Below, piece after piece: positions 122 through 39,354 of a stretch of DNA of 64,000 nt. A program made the translations under genes and the position numbers. Under the pieces are notes generated by a model. The model was not told the origin of the DNA. It saw only the letters and a list, made by a program, of their open reading frames with translations, and did no database searches. Source of the DNA: Paragordius varius (taxonomy: Eukaryota > Animalia > Nematomorpha); the NCBI GenBank assembly GCA_964247055.1, contig OZ176054.1, positions 7,502,001 through 7,566,000 on the forward strand, written 5' to 3'. Numbering within the stretch: the first letter of the stretch is position 1; each line of letters starts with the position of its first letter.

Positions 122-3100
122 TTTTTACCCTATGATGAAGTGTCCACTTTTGATTACAGCCCTTTTGAAAAAGTGTATTATGATGAAAATATCAATATGT
201 TGACTTATGAAAACTTACCTGATACTAAAGTATATATTTTAAAATGATAAAAACATTTGTACCTAATATGTGTATAATGATATATTTAATTTGAAAAAAT
301 TGGTGGAGAGCTTTTAAATGGAACGAAAATCGCATTAAAATATTTTTGAGGGAGGCAATAACGCTTTATTTTTGAGCTTTATATAAGAATTAATCCATAA
401 AATTATACTATATATGTATTTTTTTAAAATATAATTTATCACATCTTAGCATAGTAAGGTTGCACCTCATTAATTTTTTGATATATTTAGTGAAAAAAGT
501 TATTATTATCATAAACTCAATTTATAAAAAAATATAAGTGTCTTTAAAATATTATATTAAAAGGTAATAATTAAATTATGGGTAAAATCTTAAAATTCTA
601 TTGCTTAGAGCGATAATGCAAAAAACAGGTTTTGGAATTCGAAATTTATATATGCATGTATAAAAAATTATATTTCAGATCTGTTTGAATATTTTTATAT
701 ATTATCTTAAACCTGATTCACAGATATCATAAATATTTAGTAAACACTAATTAACTATAATTTTAAGTATACTTTGTTCATAAAAATAATTGAATTAATT
801 ATTTTGGACTTGTCCAAAAACGTAAGTGCTCTTCAATTTAATTCGGAATTTTAACAAAATTTTTTATTGTATTGTTTTGTACTAGACATTAAAATTTTTA
901 TTGATATGAACAAATCAATTATTCCAATCCTTTTCCATTGAACAATTTTAAATCTACTTTAAACACTGATCTTGCGGAAATTATTAAACTTCCAATATGT
1001 TAAAAAAAACTGATCCTTGTAAATTATTATATAAATTGGACCGTTTTTTCGGAACCGGTATTAATCTTTAGTTCAGGTACCCTCAGTTAGATCTAGGTTA
1101 AATTTTATAACTAATGATTGTTTTAACATACATTGTTTTAGGAAAAAGCCCCAGAAGCCGTTAAACAACTCAAGTTTAATACATTAAATACCATGCAAAT
1201 TGAAGCAATGAAGCAGGCCCAGGTTTTATTTTTATTAAAACAATATATGTAATCACAGTAAAAATAGAAATCATACAGACGAAACGTAAAAATTAAAAGA
1301 AAATATTTTTTAAAAAAGAGAATCATACCTAACAACCTTGTTTTTGTGATATACCCAACTTTTTGGGTATCACAAATGTGAAATATAAATGTAAATTGGT
1401 ACGTAACACTCTCATATATTAATTTGTGATTATTGTAGTAAAGGAATGGTTTTTTTAATAAGGTATTTGATATTTAATTTTTATGTTTTGTCCGTATATA
1501 AATTTTGATATTTAAATGATTATTTAAATTATTATATTTGCACAGATTAAAGATTCGATTGCTTTTATAGAAGCGATGGCAGAGGTGGAAAAAGTAAAAA
1601 CAACTGTTTTATAAAAATATATTTCATTTGATTTTTTACTGAAATTATATAGGTTGCAGCCAATGTTTCTGAATATCAAGTCTTAAGCACGATCGAAAAG
1701 CATCGCCGGTAAAATAAACTTTTCCTTTGCAAATTTTATTAATTTTGATATTTTACTTGTTAATTCTCAAGCGTTTTTATTACCAAATGTTTTTTAATAT
1801 ATTTCGATAATAAAGTTACTAATATCCATACGTCTTATTTTTGTTCATCGAGAAAAATTTCCTTTCTAAATCAGTATCATGTAATTGTAACTTGGGTTTG
1901 ACTTCTACGATTCTGCAAAAGAATATTTAAGCAGTTAGAAATAGTATCTATTTACATTAACCAAAAACTATCTTCGTGACTACCATTTCGAATCAGATAT
2001 TCTTTTTGAAAAGAATCATGAGGCTCGGTTCGTCTCTGCATTTTTTTAACGGGTATACAGCATTTATATTAATTTGATTCTGTAACTACTCTTTTGTGAT
2101 GCGTAGTATTTTTTTGGTGTCATTTTTTGTTTTAAGAAAACTTTTACCTTTGAACCTTTGATTGTTTTTTCCATTAATCTGGTTGGCAGATATTCTTCAA
2201 AAGCTCTATTTGAATCGTTAATTAATTTTAAAACTCTACTTTTATTTAATTACTTTTAAAATGCAGGGGTTTCCATTAATTTGGTTAAATTGCAGAAAAT
2301 TAATTGTGGATAATGCTGTGATGCATATTATTAATTGTTGTGATGGGGTATTGTTTTAGTAACATTTTTAACACTTTTCGAGTTTATATAAACCCTGTTG
2401 GTTGAATGGTTGGCTGGGATAGTCGATTAACGATATTAGCAATTTTATAGGATAACTTCCCGGTTCTATTACGGGTTTTTAGCGATAATTTATGTAGGGA
2501 TATTTTCCAAGGTGATAAAATTTCGTTCGCCCAAGAATAGGTCTTCGGCCTTTTCTTTTCTTGCCGACTTTTCCTAACATTAAATCATTATTCAAGTAAT
2601 ATCCTCGAATTAAGTGACGAAAATACCTGAATTTTGGTTAATTTAGCACGTAGCGAGTATACCAAAAATCTTTTATTAAACTTTGGTTCTGATTTTATCT
2701 AATATAAATCCGAAAGTGTTTTAAATAGAAACCTAAACCACAATTGTTTGGAACTTTTTTTTATTAATAAACTTTTCCGGATTAAAAATTGATTTTAAAT
2801 TTTAATTTTCGAATGCCATTTACCCTACTAATATTGTTTTTTTATTTAAATCATAGTTATATATTTTTAGTTTTTCAGAGAATAGTAGCATATAATAAGA
2901 TTACGGATCTATTTTTGTTAGCAAAATTCAGATTCTATCAAAAAGTGACATCTAAAATGGAATAGATTATTTGACTAAAAAACAATAAAATAACCATTTT
3001 ACCAAAAAAAACGTTAGAATTGGAAATGGAAAACTTTTTTGACAACAAATCAGCCATTTATTTAACCTGTTTAAATACTTGGATCCAAAAATTAAAAGAT

Positions 3101-5877
3101 AAACTCAATTTTTACAATTCGCTAATCTAAATTTTTTTAATATATTAAGTTACTCTGATTATGTAATTATAGAAAACAGAGCAATTATTGGGGTATAAGT
3201 ATGAAAGAGTTGGCGGCTAGTGGAATTAATGCGGCCAATCCTGATCATAAACCAACTTCCACCAATCGTTCACCAATTAATCCACACGAATTTTTTGTGG
3301 TTGAAACAGGTGCCCAATATTTGTAAGTTAATTTTAGTATTATATTATATATTTAGGTTTTCAACATTGATATAGTATAAATAAATTGTTATTAAACATA
3401 GTATGTGTTTTTATGACAGGCATATTTTAAATTTTCGTATGCTTTGTACCCATCTCAAAACTATTTTTAGATGATGGGTTTTAAATCGTTTGGGGTTAAT
3501 GCCAAACAAAATGTGATTAACAGCTGAAATTATAGGTTTATGGAGCACTTTAGTGTTTTGAATTTATTCTGTTTGTATGACGTTTGACATATCCCAAAAC
3601 ATTTTTCAGATGAAAATTGACTTTTAATCAAAATATTACTTTCTATATAACAACTTTGATTTGTAATTCAAAACAATAGGTATTTATAAATTATTTAAAA
3701 CATTAATAAATATAAATAATAATTATAGTGAAGGTACGACTGTTTTGGCTCGTACGCATGTTTTTGGTGTACCCACGACCTCTCAGAAAACCTTATACAC
3801 CGCCATTCTCAAGGGATTAATCGACTATTCCAGATTTTTGTTTCCATTTAATAGAGGTACAAGGTTTTATAAATAAATTTGTGGATAAATTTATGCATTG
3901 TTAAAAATGTTTTGTTTTTATCATATTTTTCAATGATTAGCCGATGCGATTCACCTAAATGCCAAAGCACCGTTACATGAAATCTGTCACAATCATGATG
4001 GTCGAATAAGTCATGGGGTGGGTTATTTCACAAGCGCGAATGAATGTAAGTTACTCTTAAACAAGGTCAATATTATTAAAATAGATATAATATTATAAAA
4101 TTTATCAGTAATTATGACTACTAAAATATCTATTATTTCAAAAACTAAGAAAAATGTGTTTGGACAAATATTAATAAAATAGCTATTATAATTACTATTA
4201 ATTCCTTTAAATTTTGTTTATTCCATAAACAATTTTTAATTAAATTATTGTTTCAGATCCTACAGACCTCAGTTCAGAGCATGATATAGTACCTGGAATG
4301 GTGATAACGATCGGTATGATGATTTTTCATTTGTATTAACATTAAGATTTTTATAGAGAGAGTGTTGATGCAGTCATCTTAAGATAAAGATATCGTTGTG
4401 TTTTATTTTTTGCGCCATCAACAAATTAGATATAAAATTGCTCATTGAATCTATAATTATTTGGTTTTGGAAACGAGTTTTGATTCGGGATGTAAATTAT
4501 ATCAACAACTTGTAATATAAAAATTAGAGTTTGTAAAAAAATATTTAGATCCAAAATGATTTAAAATAATTAAAAATATAAAATGTATAAAAAATATTAA
4601 ACGTATACACCATTTTATTAGATTTATTGGATTAAATACTTTCAAAAAATGTCTAAGGACTGATTTTGTTATTCTAATAAATTATGTATTTTATTGGATA
4701 TATTATTAGAGCCTAAATTGTATCTTAACGATACCGGAATAAAAATGACCAATCTTGCCATGATAAAGCATATTCCTTCTGATCCTATTTTCCAAGTATC
4801 ACTTTGTATCATATTTATATTTGTTAATATGTCTTTCCTATCTTATTAACACTTCATAACCATATTTTGATTACATTTTGTGGTGGTTATAGCTTAAACC
4901 TGCAAATAATAATCGATATGAAAGTTGTTTTGGTTAAATAATATAAGCTTATTTTTTAAAATTTCTAACTTCCCGTCCCAAATCTAGCGAGCTCCAAACA
5001 CGATCAAAATGAATCTGATTTTAAATCAATAACAAGTTATGGTAAAATGCAACCTGACAGCATTCTACACTTAATTATTTGTATTTTTAAACCATAATAT
5101 AGACCATTTATTTGCCTGTTCTATTGGCGATAAAAATGATCCTTAGAAAAAAATTGGGCCGAAAAATTTGATGAGGGTTTTTACAATTTTACATGGTTAG
5201 AAACTTTTAAATTTCGCCCAATACTTAAAATACTTTTTATTTAAACAATGGCTCTGGCATATAAAATTATTCCAAAAGGTAATGAAGTGATAATATAAAG
5301 GATGAGTAAGTATCCATTGCTAGTTTTTTTAGTTATTTCCAGGTAGCACATATAGCAAGGTATCTTTAGCTTTTATTTTTCCGCTTTTTTTTGCTTGTAG
5401 CCAATAATGAGGCTTTTTGCAGTATATACTATCCGGCAATATGTGATAAACACTAACAATGTTATTTATACTGTAATATTTGACCAAATTGTTTACAAAA
5501 GTCCCATATAAATTTTATAGATAGAGGGACAGTTTCATGGTTTTGATACATTAACCCTTATACCCTTCGAGGAAAAACTAATCGATTTTGACAAGTTAAA
5601 ATTTGACCAGGTATGGTATATTTATTCTTCTATGATTCAATCTTTCACTTTTTACATGTGGGTGTAATTAATTTATATATGTTCATTTACAATCAAATAA
5701 TTCCAAGTATGTTTTTACACAAAGGTACAATGGCTTATTGACTATTACAAAACTATAGAAAAAAAAGTGAAACCTAAACTAAGTCAACTAGGCAAAAAGT
5801 ATGTGGATGCTAGAATTTCAAAATTACTCAAAGATTATCAATGTTATGAAGCCGAAAACATTCAAACAATAATGTAA
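122..5877 (+). CDS. Xaa-Pro aminopeptidase (M24B, aminopeptidase P)-like paralog A; 5'-partial, frame intact, predicted catalytically inactive
   Basis: Eleven GT-AG exons splice into one open frame: 122-229, 1142-1222, 1546-1593, 1653-1708, 3173-3322, 3729-3856, 3941-4045, 4257-4313, 4710-4795, 5521-5610, 5725-5877. Motifs IKDSIAFIEA, VETGAQYF-EGTTVLART, SHGVGYFTSANE, TIEPKLY, GFDTLTLIPFE, QWLIDYY are collinear with paralog B. The N-terminal exons lie upstream of the window. Confidence 0.85.
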
Positions 5878-9400: not shown

Positions 9401-10107
9401 AGTTACAGTTGATTTGATGTTTTTCTTAATGTGTTTACTGACCCACCAATCATTCTCCTCGTCAAAATGACACACGGCCACTAATTTTGCACTACTGCCA
9501 ACTGCAAATTTATTTCCTGATCATACATAAAAAATAAAATTTTCATCAATTTTTTTATATAATTTTTTATCATTTAATTATGGCAATACATATAAATAGA
9601 TATTATTCATAAAGAAGTACGTATATAGGACAGCAAAAATTTGTATAAGCTATTAAACTCATAGTTTTAATATCAAAAAGTTATGTAATTAACTCATGAA
9701 TAATCTGAATATTGGTTGGCATATTATACAAGAGCAAAAAAACGTGCAATTATTTTTAAAATGAGAACAGGTTAAAAATGCATACCTTCTGGTGACCAAC
9801 GAACACACATAGCAGCGCGATTAATTCGCAGTAAAACTAAAGTTGGCTTCCATCCCTCCTCAAAGCAAGTCCAAACATAGGCATTCCTATCTTCGCCACA
9901 TGTAACTATTTGATTTGTTTTCGGAGACCAATCCAAAGCTGTAACGCGCAGTTCATGTTCTTCTAGGGTATCTAAAATTTCCCATGATTTTCCAGAATAT
10001 CCATAAATATGGACAAAATTATTGTTCATGCTGAGAGCAATCTGGTCACATTCATTATTCCAACAATGGCATGTTATTGGTTCCCCAAAATTATAATTCC
10101 TAGCCAT
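6453..10107 (-). CDS. ARPC1: Arp2/3 complex subunit 1 (p41, WD40)
   Basis: Exons 10107-9786, 9516-9339, 8522-8413, 8186-8086 (or 8068), 7800-7642, 7426-7311, 6965-6876, 6708-6618, 6536-6453. Motifs [81 protein letters not shown]. The start is placed at MARNYNFG, not at the ORF-track start. Confidence 0.93.
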
Positions 10108-11694
10108 ATGCTTTACACTGGTAGCGCAAATAAATGTGATACATAAATTTATGGATGACTTGGACCTTTCCATTATTCAATAACTTTATAAAATTAAAGG
10201 CATATAAAAATTTATTCTAAAGTACGCAAATTGGGGTTATAAAAAGACAAGATAAACCATGTTTACCACTTCATTACCTTTTCACTTTTTTTTGCCCAGC
10301 GTTCAATTTTGTAATACAGTTATGAAAGTTATTTTAGTTAAAATTTTACCAAACATTTTTTTCAAATATTGGAACAAATTTATATGTTTTCTAAACCAAA
10401 AGTTGTGACAGCTCTTAAACACGATTTAAACTACGGCTGATATCAAAAAATATCAAGTTTTTATTGGTAAAATGTAGCTTAAAGCTTTTTAGAGTCAATA
10501 ATTTATATTTTATAACCCTAAAATACATTTTTGTCTGTTGAAGCGATTTAAAAAATTTATTCAAAAATGGCGACATAGTTTGTGATGAGGATTTTACAAT
10601 ATTCCATTTATTAGAAAAAAAATTTGCATAATGTGCCTAAACTAAAGAAAGCATATTTTTAAATTTGTCTCAATATACTTTTTAGGATATTCGAATTGCT
10701 TGTGGTACCCCAAAAGATAAAGAACTGTTTTTTAATGCCAGCTAAAGGCTTTAACACTTTCTTACCATTAACACTTAAATACACCTTCCTTTCAATCCTC
10801 CGATTCTAATTTAGTCTTTGGGTACCCCAGGGCTGTTTAATAATATTTAAAATATGGAACAAATAGAAATCATTGGAAAAACTTGCATAAATATAACATT
10901 GTGCACCGAGAATTATTTTAAAAAATAATAATATATATTTTATGGGTAAACCCCGTAAAATTTAGTCAACATGATATGTTTGCATTAACTAAAACAATGC
11001 AATTTTTTGTTTATATCAATGTTTGATGTGATTTAAATAAAAAATGCCGTTATAATAAAAACGAACTTTGATGAATTTTCAAAACTCTATATATATTCAT
11101 AAGTGAATATCTTAATAAAAATTTTGAAGTGATAATTGTTAAGCATCATAGAATTATATAAAAAAATTTAGAATATATTAAATCGTTTTTATATCGTTCC
11201 ATCATGCCTAACAATAGTATGAAATATGCTTTAGCATAATTTTTCTAAAATTTAAATATTTGAAAAAATATTTAAAATTATGTTTTTATGAAAATTAGCA
11301 ATTTGAATTTTTTATCGCGAAATCCAGGCATTTTTGCGTTTATTTGCAATGGCCCATTTTAGAAGAACGAAAACATTAAGGACGTTTGGAGCTTTCATCT
11401 AAAAGGTAAAACTTTTGGAAAATACTGTTTTGCTTTTTATATGTAGTTTAAGATACATTTTAGGGATATTTTTTGGAATGAAGCATTTAGCTTTTACCAG
11501 AAAAATCTTCTTTAAAAAAAAGTGCGCAGATTTTGATGGTTTCTGATATGAAGCACTTACCACAAAAGTGTAAACATTCTAATATCACTCGTAAGGAGCA
11601 AAACCAAAAGCATCATGACAATTCTGATTAATTTTCCTATAACAAAATTTTAGGCTAAATGCTTTATTAAAAATATCATAAATATATATATATA

Positions 11695-16400: not shown

Positions 16401-16680
16401 ACTATTTTTAAACAAATGATGGGGTTATTTTTACAGAGGTTACTACATTTAATTCTAAAATATTTTTTAATAAAAAAAGGTAATTAATTAAAAAAAATTA
16501 AATATTTTTAAATTTCAAAAAGCAGTAGAAAAGTGAGCGCAGTACAATCGCGGTATTTTTCTGAAACTGTACTGCGAAAAACACCCTATCTGGTCACATT
16601 AACATATCACAAACATTGCAGTTTGTATTATTGCGCATATCAATAATTTATATATCAAATAATTGAACAAACCATCATAT

Positions 16681-16778
16681 TACGACCATATCACGTTGAA
16701 AGCACCGGTTCCCTTCCGAACACCGAAGTTAAGCAACGTTGAGCCCGGTTAGTACTTGGATGGGTGACCGCCTGGGAG
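16681..16778 (+). rRNA. 5S rRNA copy truncated at both ends (about nt 4-100 of 120); probable pseudogene or SINE3-like head
   Basis: TACGACCATATCACGTTGAAAGCACCGG...CCGAAGTTAAGCAACG...GGTTAGTACTTGGATGGGTGACCGCCTGGGA is the recognisable metazoan 5S sequence. The last ~20 nt are missing and TTTTTT follows. Confidence 0.9.
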
Positions 16779-17757
16779 TTTTTTAAATTTTATCAGTCAA
16801 ATTATTATTTTAATAAATATAAGAAACTGCAAACATGTGCCGAATAATTTAAAAAAACGGTTATAAATCGATGATTTAGGTTCCACTTAGTTTTAGTCGA
16901 ATGGAGTTATTTTCTATAATTTTGCTGGCTTAATTATTTGGATACTGTGCAGAATTAAAATTTAAACATAAAACGGCTAGATTTTGTAAACCACTTTTCT
17001 TAAAAACAAAATTAAAATATAAATGTAATTTTAAGAAAGGGTCAACGTTGTGTCAATTGAAAAAAAACACTAATATTATTTTTTGGAACCGGAATTCGGT
17101 TAAAAAAACATTCTGTATTTAGATACTTTGGTCCCAAAACTAGCTATCGGTTAGGTTTAACTGAAACGGTAGCTCCGATTCCTTATGCATGACGTAACCA
17201 TTTTCAAAAAAACATTTTGATTATATATGTTTATTCATATGATATGATAAACATAATGATAGAAATAAAATTTATTTCACTAATTTATATCTTCTCAATT
17301 ATTATTTAAGTCACTAAAATGTCTAAAATTGTCACATAGTTTCATATAGTTCAAGTTATGATTCGCTCTCTGGTATGGTAGAATGATAATTTCACTATAA
17401 ATGTCTTTTTATTTAAATATCCTTGTTGATAAACTGAATTATATAAGTGAATGTCTCAAGTTATAATCAATCAATATTTAGCAAACTTGATTTTTTTATA
17501 ATTATAAGTTTTATTACTTCTCTATATTACCTTAAAATAATGGTGGCTCCAGTAAAAAGTTTTAGTTATAATTTAATCCGATAATTATTACATTATTGTT
17601 TTTACTTATATGTTGATTATTGATTAGAAAATATTTAAATTACAGCTATATATATATATATATATAGATATTGGCGTCTTGGCGGCGCCTTGTATAAAAT
17701 ACGATACAAATACTGAGAGATCAGATTTATAAATTAATTTACTTTATTAATTGTATA

Positions 17758-30913: not shown

Positions 30914-31560
30914 TATATTATCAGTATTATTAATTATTACTTGGAAACAACACATTCATTTTACTTCTCCAATTCAAATTGGGGTTTTTGGGGACCTCAT
31001 GACAAATTAAAATCATTGCAAAAGTTTCCAGTTATATAACATTGATGCATCGAAATATAAGAAAGATTAATTTACTAATACTTATTTTATTGATAATCCT
31101 CAAATTTAGTTAACATGACATGTGTGCTATATTAGTAAAATATTAAAATAATGGATAAACCACTTTGTCTGTTGATATTAATCCTAGATGTCATTTTAAA
31201 TAATTACATTCAATATTGGCGTTAGGATCAAATAACCACCATATTTTGCAAAAATTTTGTAAAACATAAATGGTGTCGAAGTAGTATGTGAAACATTTCA
31301 AAACTAAATTTTATTTAGATATTTTGCTTTATTTATATAATTTATATTAGGATAAGAGTATAAATTTTAATTATAACCGTTTCTTTAGTTTTTCTAAATA
31401 TCAACTTAAATATATTCTGGCCACCCTAGATACCCTAAATGGAAGTATTAAGTGGACCCGAAATTTTATCTATTTTAAAAGTCTTAGCTATTTTTTTCGA
31501 ATGGGAAGCGTGTCATCTTTAAGAGTTTGAGACAAAAATCACGGTGATTCCGAACCTGAT

Positions 31561-34500
31561 ATGCATTTACTTAATTTTCCAATGTTTTCATATGTTGTAA
31601 AATTTATTTTTAATTTTAGGCTCCGCTTTTCCAAAATGCTGAAACAAATTTATCGGATACCAATACTTGCAGAGATGTCAAACTTCATAAATTGCGTGAG
31701 TTAATGCATAGTCGTAATTTAATCGGTTACATTGTTTCAAATACGGACGAACACCAAGTATTTTAATATATGCTATCTCTTAATTATTTATACAAATTAT
31801 GTACAACTTTTTTCACTCTTCAAAAAGGGATGACAAAAAACTCAGCAAAAAACATATTTATGATTTTAGTATCTAAATATTCCACTTCAGTTAAATTTTT
31901 TATATATTTTTCGCCGTTAGCATTAATTTGTTAGAGTCAAATCGTTTTTTTTCTAAATTGATATTTTTTTAATTTTACACACATTTAGAATGAATATCTA
32001 AATGACGTTGATAAAAGAAGACAATTTATTTCGGGATTTACTGGATCAGCAGGTAAACTGTTCAATTTTTATTTCGATCGCATTCAAGGTTCGTATCTGT
32101 TAAATATGAAAAATAAAAATAAAATATTCAATTATAAAATTCGGCCACCAATTTTTTTAATGCTTATATATGTTTATTTAATTCAAATCAATTTTTTTCC
32201 AAATTTAGCTACTTAACCAGTACAATTGGAATTTTAATCCATAATAATCAAATTGTTTTTAGGTGATATTTTGATCACACATGATAATGCTCTTCTTTGG
32301 ACTGATGGTAGATATCATTTACAGGCGGAACGCGAACTAGATCTCAAATGTTGGATGGTAATGAAATCAGGTACATATTTAAAATCATAAAACCTAATTT
32401 TTTAAGAATTTTTTAGAGATTTTGATAATTAGTAAAAATAATTATGTTACCATGAATTAGTTAAAGCTAAATAGGTAATTCCTTGAAAAAAGTTTAATTT
32501 TTTATTACGTTAAAAAACATCAGGTAAATATGATACTAGTAGGGTTGGGTTTTTGGATAATCGGGTTGGGTATCAAATAATTAGTTTGACCGCTTTTTTA
32601 TTTTCCTAGAATAGTATTAAGGTCACATTCCATGCAACTCATAGTCCGTCAAACCATAATTTAGTATATATTTTGGCTGTATTTAAATATTGAGAGCGGG
32701 TTTGTGGCAAAATGAAATAGTTTTGAAACCATTTTAAATCGACAATAGATTTAAACTTTTTTCGAATACATTTAAGGATATGCCCATGTTCTCAATGTGA
32801 CACAATGGATCAAAGCCAACCTCAACGGTGGAACCAAAATTGGTGTGTTTGCGGATACCATATCCTATGGTAAATTTAAAAATTCTAAAAAATGTCTGAT
32901 TCGTTAACTCTAATCTTTTTCAAAAAATAAAGTGTTGATTAAGGTTGGTATTTATTTAACTTTGTAGAGTATAAATTTTGAGCCATTTATATTAATCGCA
33001 CATTATTATTAATATGGATGAAGATGGTAAAAAGTGTGGGAAGTACGCTATATTAACGATTGTAATTTACGAAATTTCCATACAGTTGATAAATATTTTT
33101 TTTGCTTTATAATTTTATAAAGAATTATATGTCAATTCTTATTTTATTATACCCATATAACTTGCTCGTTATTTACTTCTCACAAGGTAATTTAGCTAAA
33201 TCCCCTATAACACCTAAATCAGAGGTTAAGCCACTATTTCTGTTATTGGCTCGGTTGTTCTGCCACAAATATATAATTATATATCTTTTTAAAAGTAATT
33301 ATTTTTTTCATATACCAATTACAATTCAAATTCATACTAAAACAATTCATATTCACCCTTGAACAATTTAAATTTACTTTAAAAATAAATGATATGTTTT
33401 TGGGTTAATATAACTCATTAATTAATATGAAATAAATTCTTATGGCATAGTTAATTATTTTTTCAGTATTATTCTGATTTTAAACAAAAATTTCTTTTTT
33501 GTAAAAATATAAAAAAAATATAAGTATTGAGCTTAAAAAACCCATATTTATATTAGGGTGAATTTGAATTGTTCAAGAGTGAATTTGAATAGTTCTAGGG
33601 TGAATTTGAACTGTAATGGTTTATTTTGCGGATAACCCGCGTTCGGCTTTCTACAGTTCAAGTGTATGCCATGCATGTTGACATTAATATCATGCTGAAA
33701 TAACTTCCTCTTGATTAATCTTTCGAATCATTGGTTACTTTTTCGAAAAAAACTTCAGTAAAATTTTTTTATTAAAAAATTCCCCTTTTAAAGGTTTGCC
33801 TATTATATTGTTCTATTTCGTCTCTATCATTGTCGTACCCATATATACCATTTGCACTTCAAGAGTGTCCTTGAACATTTCAAGTTGGTCCTTGAACAGT
33901 TCAAGTTGGTCCATGAACATTTCAAGTTGGTCCTTTGACTTTTTTGTTTTGTTTTTAACTTTTATCAATCAAATCGTAAATATTTCATCTATTTTATTGT
34001 TTTTAACCTATTTTCTATTATTTAACATTAATTTTAAATCGATATCAACTTTTAATCTTTGAGAAACCGTATATCTTTATTAATTTCGTGAAATTATTTT
34101 AGATATTCAAAAGATTTTAACATGCAATTAAAAATATGTAAATTTTCGGGGTAATTATTTACAATTTTTTTTGAAAACATTTATAAAAGTTTTTAATTTT
34201 GTCAAATTGGAAAAAAAATAGTTTGAAACCAAAAAGTGGTTTTTAAATAAAATTTTTTATTTTTAAATGGATAAATATATAATAAATTAAGAAAATTAGG
34301 TTAATAAATAATAAAATAAAAAAATAAATGCAAAAATTATGGTTAAATCAAATTTATACATTTTAAGGACCAACTTGAAGTGTTCAAGGACCAACTTGAA
34401 ATGTTCAAGGACCAACTTGAATTGTTCAAGGACCCACTTGAATTGTTCAAGGACCAACTAAAATTGTTCAAGGACCAACTTGAACTGTTCAAGGACCAAT

Positions 34501-37500
34501 TTGAATTGTTCAAGGACCAACTTAAAAAAGTTCAAGGAGACTCTTGAAGTGCAAATGGTATAAATCATGTTTGCTGAATTAACTACAATATGACTTGGCA
34601 TTTTTATCGGCATCTTCTACTACAATCAAAGCTTTCCAAAGAAAGACGTGATGAGCGGTCTAAAGGTGTTCTTTGTTTAACTCATTTTAAAAGTTTTAAC
34701 AATCTATGATTTAGTTTAAAATTATTAATTTAGAAAAATTTTAATCTGATTAAAGTGTATTACGATTCTTATAATTATACCGGTCTTATATTTTGCAGCT
34801 TAGAAAGATAAATATTGAAATATTAACAAAACATTTTTGCCCATAAAAACTAATATTATTTTAAACGGACGACATAAATAATGTGGCAAATACGTATAAT
34901 TTAGAAAGCAATATTTTTTTAATTTGTTTTTTAATTTAAATAATATATAATTTTAAAAGTTTTCAATAATTAATTAATATTTTATGCAGAAAATTACAAA
35001 AAAATTTGGGATGCACTTCATACGACTCACATACCCGCGTTGTTAAACGAGGATTTGGTTGATCAAGTTTGGAATTTTGTGGATATTCATCACAAAAATA
35101 ATGGAGATGCCAAAAGTGCCCCAATCTTTGAGTTACCCCTTAAATTTTCTGGTAAATTTACCTATTAAATTTTTACTAATTGCTTATAAAAAAAATTATT
35201 TAAAAAATATCCAAATTGAAAATTCCCACAACTAAAGGTTGAAATTATACGATAGGTGAATCATGGGAAAGTAAAGTTAAGCGTGTCAGGGATGTTATGC
35301 CTCATAGCCGAACTCATGCCAACATTAGTTTTGGCATGTTAATTTATCAATTGGATGACGTTGCATGTAATTATATTATAATTAAAAACTATTGTTTATC
35401 ATATTAAATCATATAAATCTATATTTTTATAAGTATATAATTTTAAAAATTCATTCAAATAACTCATTATTCCGCATATAAATTATATTTATTATTCTAA
35501 TAAACGAGACAGGGCTCCTAAATTTACGAGGAAACGATATACCGTTCAATCCTGTTTTCTTTGCCTACGTTGGGTTGACCAATACTCATATAAAGTATAA
35601 TCATATTTTAACAAATAGTTTATATATAAACGATGTTAAAGTTCCAGCCGAAATAAGGACTCAATATACGGGCCATTGCCAAAATACCTCTTCAACGTAT
35701 TGCATTAGGGTAAAATTTATGGTTTTTTAAAATTTGATTTTAACGAAATTTATAAGGGATTGGGTTTTGACATTCAAAAAAATTGGTCTGACCGCTAAAG
35801 TCCTTCATGGTCACAATCAGCCATTTTAAATTGAAATATATAATTCAAATCTAAAGATAAAATTGAATCAAATTAAATGTTTTATAAAAAAATTGATAAA
35901 TTTTTAGATATATCGAAGTAAAAACAATTTTTATGCCCAAAAATAATGACTGACTATCTTTCAGAGTGGTCAAATTTCTGAGAAATGCATACCAGTAAGA
36001 CGCAACTCTACTTATTAATATTTATAAAAATGTTTTATCAATAGATTTTACCGTATAGCCAGGCAAATAATTTTTTTACCACAAACGAATTCGATCGCAC
36101 CTATCTGTTGTCGGGAAATAGTATGTGTGTTTACCAATCATTGCTTAATAAATTCAACGATACTCAATTATCAAACGTAATAAATTTTTTGGAAAGTGCC
36201 CCCACCAGATCTCTTAAATTAGTTAAAAATGCAATCGAAATTGAGGGAATGAAAAAAGCACAAGTATATGCAAAAATAGTCGATTCGAATTTAATATATT
36301 GACTTTGTAATACATTATAGATCATAAACAGTAAATGGACTTTTCACCACTTTTTTTTATCTACACATAACCGTTAAATTAATTTGGTTATACTTATTTC
36401 ATTACCATTATAAAAGCATCCTATAATTATCAAGTTTCTTAGCAGGTCTCGAATTATAGTTTATACCGAATAAATAATTTATATCATATAATTTATATTT
36501 ATAGCATCGTGATTCCGCTGCATTGATTGAAGCGATTGCCTATTTAGAAAATCAGGTATTATTAACCCTACAGTGGTTTTTTTCTTATCGGTTTCGTCAA
36601 TATCTTCACAAATGAATATAAACTTTTTTTTAACAATTAGAGAATCACTTATCAAAAAAATTGATTTATATATAATCGATATTTTTATTTATATACCCTA
36701 GTTGGAAAACAATCAAACATTGGATGAAATATCATTCACCACGGTTCTAGAAAAATATCGAAGGTTTTTTCGACTGAATTTTTTCTCCAATTATTTGAAT
36801 TCGAATCAATTAACTTTTTTTAAACAATATTAATACACATATAGCAAACAAGAAAATTATGCTGGTTTAAGTTTTGACCCCATTTCAGCAGTTGGGCCCA
36901 ATGGTGCATACGTGCATTACAAATCTCAACAATCTACCAACAGACCTATCACTAAAACGGAAATGTATCTTTTGGATTCTGGTGCACAATATTTGTAATA
37001 TATTAAGTTATATAAATTACTAAATTGCTTGTTTTTGGAAATTTTTATAAATAGAATTTGTCTAGTGGGTATGAAATATTTAATATGTAACGTAATGATC
37101 AGGCTTTAACTACCAATAGAAATTTAATATATTCCCACCAATGTTACTCTAAAGTTTAATGAATTTTTTTATATTCTTTGTTAGAATGTCCGTAAAACTT
37201 TATTTTATTAAATAGTAATAGGTTAAAACCTGTCTTAAAGAAAAATCGAAAATTATATGAACCATTAACTTATTTTTATCCATAAATGAAAAAGAAATAT
37301 ACATTATGAATTTTATACGAGTTCCTTAAAAATAAAAATATTTTAGGGACGGGACGACTGATGTTACACGAACTTTTCATTTTGGCACACCAAGACCCAT
37401 TGAACAAGTATAATTCAAACGTTATATACGTTGATTTTATAGGAAGTTTACACCAGAGTATTGATGGCTGCTATAGATTTGGCTAAAACTAAATTCCCCT

Positions 37501-39354
37501 ATTACGTTCCAAGTAAAATGTTACATTTTCATTTAATCTCTCTAAGTGTTTGAAGTTGTTACAGTTTGGAATTCATGGAATTGATTGTTAAATTTCCCAC
37601 AAATATTTATAAAATATTGAAATATATATACAACTTACGATTGAAATTCAAGTGTGCAGTTGGCTATAAACATAAATCTATTTTACATTTAATGACCAAA
37701 CTATACCCTAAATATAAGGTTCCTATTTAAAAATTCCAAAATTATTCTATTTTAATACGAAAAAAGAAAATATAAAGTTATTTTAATATTTAAGCGCGTT
37801 CGCTTGATGCCATTACGAGAGCCTCGCTTTGGCAATTAGGGATGGATTATAGGCATGGGACAGGTCATGGGATCGGTGCATATCTTAATGTCCATGAAGG
37901 TTTCCATATTATTTAATTAAATTACTGTTCCCTTAGGAAATCTTTTTTATTCTAGATTATTTGGCTTTAAATTAATTCAAGGATATATAGTGTTTCAAAG
38001 CAAATTTGAGTTATCAATAAATGAATATTTTTAAAGTTTTACAACCTACTAAATTTAAATCTATTTTGATTAAATTTAATTTTTTTTAATTTTTATACAG
38101 GCATACCTCTGAGTGTCACTACACCCAAAGATTTTTACTTAAAACATGGCATGTTTTTATCTGATGGTTATATATTTTATATATTTATTCTCAATAACAT
38201 TAAGCACTTTGTCCTAGTTTACCTTTTGGGGTAGCCCAGAGCTCAATTTTGTAAAGAAACTACTGTTTTGAAAGTTATTTTAGTTAAAAATTAATTATCA
38301 AACATTGTTCTTATTTATTTAATAAAAACTTATATTTTTACAGTTTTGTAATATTTGGAGTCTGAAAGTGGGACAACTCTAAAACAACGAACAGCTGATA
38401 TTAATATTATAATATATCAAGTTTTTGCTGTTAAAATATAGCCTTAAAGCTTCTTTATTTTTTTACAATTTTACATTTTTTTTAATAAAAATATTTTGTA
38501 TAATGCGTCTAAAAGGCTAAAGAAAGCATATTTTTACATTCGGATTAATACTTAAAATACTTTTGATTTTCAAATCACTCTGGGATATAAAACTACCCCA
38601 AAAGGTAGTTGAGGAGTGTTCATTTAATCTCTATATATTTTTGTAAGAACCTGGATACTATAAATCTAATGATTTTGGCGTCCGGCTCGAAACAATTGTT
38701 ATGGTCAAAAATGTTACAACAAAGGTGAAAATATTACAATTCTTTTTTGTTTCTAAAAGCAAATGAATTTTATAAATTCTAATTTTAAATCAAAATTAAC
38801 TTTTTTTTTTTTCGAAAATAGTATGGCGGTCCATATGATGGCCAATATCTTGGATTTGATGCCGCTACATTAGTTCCTTTTGAGCCACGACTAATTTTAT
38901 ATAACCTTTTGAACTGTGATCAAGTATATATTAATTTAATAACCTTTATTTTTTGATAAACATGGTAAAAAATATCTAATTTTGATAAATAGTATTAAAT
39001 CTTTTTTTGCAATTCGCTTAAAATTATTTGCATAAAAAGAGCCATACAATCGATTATAAGATTTCCTACTAATTATATATTATAAAAGCCATATTTATTG
39101 GCTAAAAGCAAAAAGTAAATGGATAAGCAAATAATATTACTCTTTTCTGTTAATTCCATCTGGTAATGTATAAAAAAACTAACAATATATTTTTTTATTA
39201 CACGGTAAATTAGTTAAAATGGCTTGAACGATACAATGAAGATGTGATACAGTATGTCAAGCCCATTATAGCTATGCAAAGAGATGAAAAAGCCTTGAAA
39301 TGGTTAGAGGATAGAACTCAACCAATTGCTCAACTTCAAAAATGTCCCAATTGA
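31561..39354 (+). CDS. XPNPEP2: Xaa-Pro aminopeptidase (aminopeptidase P) paralog B, extracellular XPNPEP2-like, catalytic residues intact
   Basis: About 20 exons. Motifs [110 protein letters not shown]; stop at 39352-39354. The start codon at 31561 is tentative; coding sequence is secure from 31620. Confidence 0.92.
33315..33619. mobile_element. Foldback-type MITE with 21-bp subterminal repeats (GGGTGAATTTGAATTGTTCAA), intronic
   Basis: Inverted ends TACCAATTACAATTCAAATTCA / TGAATTTGAACTGTAATGG. Homologous to 52647-53333. Confidence 0.7.
33848..34558. mobile_element. Foldback-type MITE with 21-bp tandem repeats (AAGGACCAACTTGAAATGTTC), intronic
   Basis: TIR TA-CCATTTGCACTTCAAGAG...CTCTTGAAGTGCAAATGG-TA, with about 4 units on the left arm and about 8 inverted units on the right arm. 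Confidence 0.85.

Follow-up and report, generated by a model that had tools for sequence, protein, structure and literature searches.

A 64,000-nucleotide stretch of the Paragordius varius genome (contig OZ176054.1, forward-strand positions 7,502,001 to 7,566,000; hereafter, the window) carries, at positions 122-5877, the last 11 of the 19 coding exons of an aminopeptidase P (APP)-like gene on the plus strand, here called gene A. Judging from its sequence, gene A probably encodes a full-length, intact APP homologue that is catalytically dead and whose fold is maintained by selection, likely for binding. The anatomy of the gene, its substitutions and its relations to its paralogs could be read directly from the DNA. 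They support the core of the original prediction, namely that the gene is intact, its catalytic centre dismantled and its open frame kept by selection, although for selection the support is indirect.

We modelled the gene copies with a purpose-written protein-to-genome spliced aligner and checked the junctions of gene A by eye. In the source genome (110.6 Mb, 44 contigs, GC content about 26%), the other 8 coding exons of gene A were located in the 10 kb fetched upstream of the window (L001), on the contig called C5. The full model begins with ATG, ends with TAA and comprises 618 codons in 19 exons separated by 18 GT-AG introns, with 0 premature stops and 0 frameshifts; it spans C5:7492426-7507877. 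Coordinates below are window positions unless preceded by L001 or another contig name, and residue numbers are those of human XPNPEP1 (3CTZ).

L001 425-450, plus strand: exon 1, ATG mini-exon; canonical splice site
L001 529-610, plus strand: exon 2; canonical splice sites
L001 1609-1675, plus strand: exon 3; canonical splice sites
L001 3474-3560, plus strand: exon 4; canonical splice sites
L001 6466-6723, plus strand: exon 5; canonical splice sites
L001 7762-7860, plus strand: exon 6; canonical splice sites
L001 8394-8475, plus strand: exon 7; canonical splice sites
L001 8622-8715, plus strand: exon 8; canonical splice sites
122-229, plus strand: exon 9, end of domain II; AG/GT flanks, phase 0-0, collinear with paralogs B and D
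1142-1222, plus strand: exon 10; AG/GT, paralog alignment
1546-1593, plus strand: exon 11; AG/GT, paralog alignment
1653-1708, plus strand: exon 12; AG/GT, paralog alignment
3173-3322, plus strand: exon 13, with H395D and D415E; PF00557 positions 43-85 (E 0.0038), B exon anchored on 3CTZ 379-420
3729-3856, plus strand: exon 14, with D426V; direct match to 3CTZ 422-461 and PfAPP 459-495, PF00557 positions 90-125
3941-4045, plus strand: exon 15, with W477H, H485G, H489 kept and H498N; the most degenerate exon, aligned to B, C and D
4257-4313, plus strand: exon 16; AG/GT, paralog alignment
4710-4795, plus strand: exon 17, with E523 kept (split codon), R535K and E537T; paralog alignment
5521-5610, plus strand: exon 18, M24 C-terminal region; PF16188 positions 1-24 (E 1.1e-5)
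5725-5877, plus strand: exon 19, the last, with TAA stop; PF16188 positions 28-54

Every junction among the window exons is AG/GT with compatible phases, and the joined frame stays open until the TAA at 5875-5877. Reading the DNA and translating the exons confirmed the 11 exons, canonical splice sites and single open frame that had been predicted; the exons are real, but several of their predicted edges were off by 1-20 bases, and exon 13 starts at 3173. The upstream exons, where disabling mutations had been proposed as a possible objection, are all present (8 of 8) and open, with canonical splice sites and an ATG start. The first coding exon is a mere 26 coding nt, or 9 codons. This mini-exon is credible because paralog B, further downstream in the window, has a matching one (31561-31583; 8-9 codons in the two genes) that ends in the same phase, phase 2, and in the same codon, and in either gene the closer ATG, found in the following exon, lies out of frame. 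That exon 2 of gene A contains a frameshift or lacks a start was ruled out by the mini-exon, found also in B, and about 19 aa of domain I that had seemed lost were recovered with the true acceptor of exon 5. The product, at 618 aa, is about as long as human XPNPEP1 and matches canonical APP1 (623 aa). By eye, both ends of the protein lack a hydrophobic stretch, and no signal peptide or glycosylphosphatidylinositol-anchor signal of the XPNPEP2 type was seen.

Public libraries were searched exon by exon, and the joined proteins were used for local alignment only. The exons of gene A, scanned singly, gave collinear Pfam matches in the order Creatinase_N_2, Peptidase_M24 and Peptidase_M24_C, most of them below the family cut-offs (PF16189, 32.4 bits, above the cut-off; PF00557, 17.5 and 13.1 bits; PF16188, 25.6 and 14.8 bits). 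Exon 14 aligns directly with the human (3CTZ) and Plasmodium (5JQK) APP structures, and gene A is collinear with B and D over its full length. Gene A has the M24B architecture, in which the pita-bread Peptidase_M24 domain is accompanied by APP-type N-terminal domains and a C-terminal region. A whole-genome scan with PF01321 (Creatinase_N) matched no copy and is uninformative.

Whole-genome Pfam scans revealed four APP-type genes, A to D. The paralogs of gene A are the following.

31561-39354, plus strand: paralog B, in 19 coding exons with every ligand and active-site histidine kept; PDB-anchored
C7:1718700-1727300: paralog C, all ligands intact; the most canonical copy, on another contig (fetched as L002 and L003)
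C5:6430000-6444100: paralog D, all ligands intact; 1.06 Mb upstream of gene A on the same contig (fetched as L004 and L005)

The genome thus seems to carry three apparently active APP1-type genes and one dead one. Paralog B had been noted as lying 26 kb from gene A and indeed begins 25.7 kb downstream, but the nearest relative of A is D. Across all three domains A shares 37-40% identity with D and 31-35% with B. The tree built from the catalytic halves has the form ((A,D),(B,C)) with support 83/86 (branch A 1.44, branch D 0.86), and a four-residue gap near the C-terminus is common to A and D. It follows that D, not nearby B, is the relevant active sister of A. The model of B is probably short by about 15 residues, as its open frame continues at 32797-32907 (plus strand), which would bring the protein nearer to 650 than to 634 aa. 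The paralogs also contain micro-introns, of 23 nt in C (L002 2832-2854) and 35 nt in B (37408-37442); the equivalent intron of A is about 1 kb long, and the shortest intron of A is 59 nt.

The residue numbering was fixed via the exons of B, and gene A was placed by alignment of the four copies, its exon 14 (D426V) being also aligned directly to 3CTZ. The catalytic, substrate and dimer residues compare as follows.

D415, metal ligand: E in gene A
D426, metal ligand (bridging): V in gene A
H489, metal ligand: kept in gene A
E523, metal ligand: kept in gene A
E537, metal ligand (bridging): T in gene A
H395, active-site histidine: D in gene A
H485, active-site histidine: G in gene A
H498, active-site histidine: N in gene A
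R535, substrate arginine: K in gene A
W477, dimer tryptophan: H in gene A

Gene A therefore lacks both the five-ligand set of active M24B enzymes, in place of which it has E, V, H, E and T, and their H395/H485/H498/R535 set, which reads D, G, N and K. The predicted ligand changes (D to E, D to V and E to T), the survival of one histidine and one glutamate, and the conversion of three histidines to D, G and N were all borne out by the 3CTZ numbering and the paralog alignment. The helix of W477 is rewritten in A and contains a three-residue insertion. By contrast, B, C and D retain every ligand, every active-site histidine, R535 and W477, with D showing two changes beside H485. The equivalents of D426 and E537 bridge both metals in the M24 fold. 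Because both bridging ligands are gone, and because Escherichia coli APP loses its activity when one of the equivalent aspartates or His243 is mutated (work cited in PMC10377022), we strongly infer that the product of gene A is catalytically inactive as a metallopeptidase. At most a weak single-metal site, formed by H489 and E523, would be left in a centre whose D415 is now E, and the residues that hold the substrate and its proline would be replaced.

The signs that the gene was kept by selection are indirect. Intron-like sequence contains 7.9% stop codons, or one per about 12.7 codons, and 618 open codons would be expected by chance with P about 1e-22. Since 6.5% of point mutations in the codons of A create a stop, the frame would have less than a 0.05 chance of still being open after more than 2.5% neutral divergence. 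Yet of 72 positions invariant in B, C and D, gene A keeps 39 and differs at 33, and so many changes would have taken far longer than 2.5% neutral divergence allows. Synonymous sites are saturated between A and D (88 identical codons, 87 expected; proportion of synonymous differences, pS, 0.785), and despite this randomisation 206 of 536 residues (38%) are identical. The branch of A is just 1.7-fold that of D, which fits a relaxed but real constraint. The GC content of the exons of A is 0.354 compared to 0.247 for its introns, similar to the values in the active paralogs. From these comparisons we infer purifying selection on gene A. In the mechanism we propose, selection would preserve the fold of a 618-aa, three-domain APP homologue of the cytosolic type that would no longer be a metallopeptidase, and the protein would act by binding, not cleaving.

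Several observations weigh against this interpretation. The signs of selection are within-genome comparisons, which mix the history of A before and after the loss of activity. Gene A matches its paralogs at 2 of the 8 core active-site positions and at 37 of the 64 other invariant ones, a difference that is not clearly significant, and it appears to have diverged broadly rather than to have been struck specifically at the active site. It is known here from genomic sequence, and its first coding exon, of only 26 nt, was deduced from the DNA. Exon 15, which carries the W477, H485 and H498 positions, is so degenerate that by itself it had no match in PDB or Pfam. The sole match of exon 13 in a large protein library, which does not include gene A itself, was a spurious 1126-aa repeat protein, and a word search with the longest exon of A gave no match; neither search yielded an orthologue. 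One alternative is a very young, undisrupted pseudogene or silent relic, that is, a gene functional until a short time ago, possibly in a role that was already non-enzymatic, which has since begun to drift. The unrecognisable histidine-rich exon 15 and the empty orthologue searches favour such a relic, as does the branch of A, the longest among the four paralogs. However, 618 codons and 36 splice dinucleotides contain 0 stops, frameshifts or broken splice sites, an open frame would hardly survive neutral drift beyond about 2.5%, the exon GC content has still not relaxed towards that of the introns, and the many active-site changes must have accumulated while the frame was open. We therefore consider a relic unlikely, although it is the alternative that survives best.

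Slightly less likely again, the 19-exon model may be partly wrong, the real product being shorter or otherwise spliced and the word "intact" an overstatement. The model rests on paralog homology and on our own aligner, which left out about 15 aa of B and introduced spurious micro-exons into C, and the start exon is tiny; against this, inspection by eye covered AG/GT, phase and paralog continuity at each junction of A, and the length of the product agrees with that of canonical APP1. The least probable alternative is that A still hydrolyses peptides, with a modified centre that may hold a single metal and with a different range of substrates. In its favour, H489 and E523 survive, D415E is conservative, a histidine stands right after the H395D position, extra histidines precede the H485G position, and a model of the Caenorhabditis elegans protein PID-5 places one zinc at the equivalent site (PMC10377022). 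Against it, the bridging ligands are now V and T, poor or null metal binders, the three active-site histidines and R535 are gone, and the E. coli mutations mentioned above inactivate singly.

Gene A is at present best described as a well-documented model of a gene whose product has probably lost its activity. To our knowledge, the pita-bread fold has given rise to few pseudo-peptidases (EBP1, the Spt16 N-domain, PID-5), and the only APP-derived one is PID-5. Compared to XPNPEP1/APP-1 (M24B; PDB 3CTZ, 4S2R), gene A agrees in length, three-domain order and exon-by-exon homology, and likewise shows by eye no signal peptide or hydrophobic C-terminus, but it has substitutions at three of the five ligands, at the three active-site histidines, and at R535 and W477. 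PID-5 (UniProt Q9GUI6) comprises a complete APP1-like unit that has lost metal ligands, was judged inactive and co-purifies with active APP-1 (PMC7849312, PMC10377022). It retains the MA-site histidine and the first glutamate, the two ligands that A retains. By contrast, PID-5 keeps the dimer tryptophan and the H485 equivalent, which A has replaced by H and G, and is 41% identical to CeAPP-1, whereas A is only 26-38% identical to its paralogs. PID-5 also has an eTudor domain fused N-terminally, whereas A appears free-standing, its APP domain I helix following right after the mini-exon (no Tudor scan covered the sequence before the ATG). Because the origin of PID-5 is placed within a Caenorhabditis subgroup, by fusion with a Tudor gene (PMC7849312), and because A is so distant from its paralogs, common descent is unlikely: A would have arisen independently of PID-5 and is probably much older. 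In addition, W477H and the remodelled helix argue against a PID-5-like binding of active APP via the canonical interface. EBP1 (PA2G4), an M24A pseudo-peptidase, has kept the pita-bread fold and 2 of 5 metal ligands and serves as a binding platform (PMC11266112). Two of five ligands are left in A as well, but EBP1 descends from the methionine aminopeptidase branch and A from the three-domain APP branch, and nothing seen here points to ribosome or RNA binding by A.

If gene A is a maintained pseudo-enzyme, and only under that condition, its possible roles can be ranked, with a remainder left unassigned. The first choice, by analogy with EBP1, would be a binding platform with a re-purposed cleft, which we put forward tentatively, at somewhat short of an even chance. 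A partner or regulator of the active APPs B, C or D, as PID-5 may be for APP-1, comes second and is clearly less likely, and a canonical APP heterodimer is weakened because W477 and its helix are remodelled. A peptide decoy is more doubtful still, because the proline pocket (H395, H485, H498, R535) is replaced. Any particular binding partner would be a guess.

Genes A and B are not adjacent, as other genes and a 5S ribosomal RNA gene (16678-16796, plus strand; Rfam RF00001, 82.8 bits) lie between them; Rfam and tRNA scans of the locus gave no match inside gene A. Also between A and B, at 9772-10173 on the minus strand, a 133-codon open frame resembles by eye an exon of the WD-repeat Arp2/3 subunit 1. 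One intron of B (38212-38607) holds an interspersed repeat, about 420 bp long, that has partial copies, of 71-84% identity, in three introns of A (L001 9398-9882, L001 5795-6029 and window 5220-5281), and a second repeat joins 31018-31447 to intron 2 of A (L001 818-1228) at 65%.

Gene A would represent an additional dead APP, beside the known precedent of PID-5, which is young and domain-fused. Together with three apparently active copies, it would offer a natural system in which the APP fold can be followed in function without catalysis, and would also let one ask whether inactive partners commonly control N-terminal proline trimming. A more specific proposal, speculative and on balance unlikely, is that the three active APPs of the worm are regulated or localised by A, acting as a free-standing pseudo-aminopeptidase P of old origin. 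If true, the PID-5:APP-1 arrangement would have been invented a second time, independently, which would suggest that dead APP partners recur as a means of controlling N-terminal Xaa-Pro trimming.

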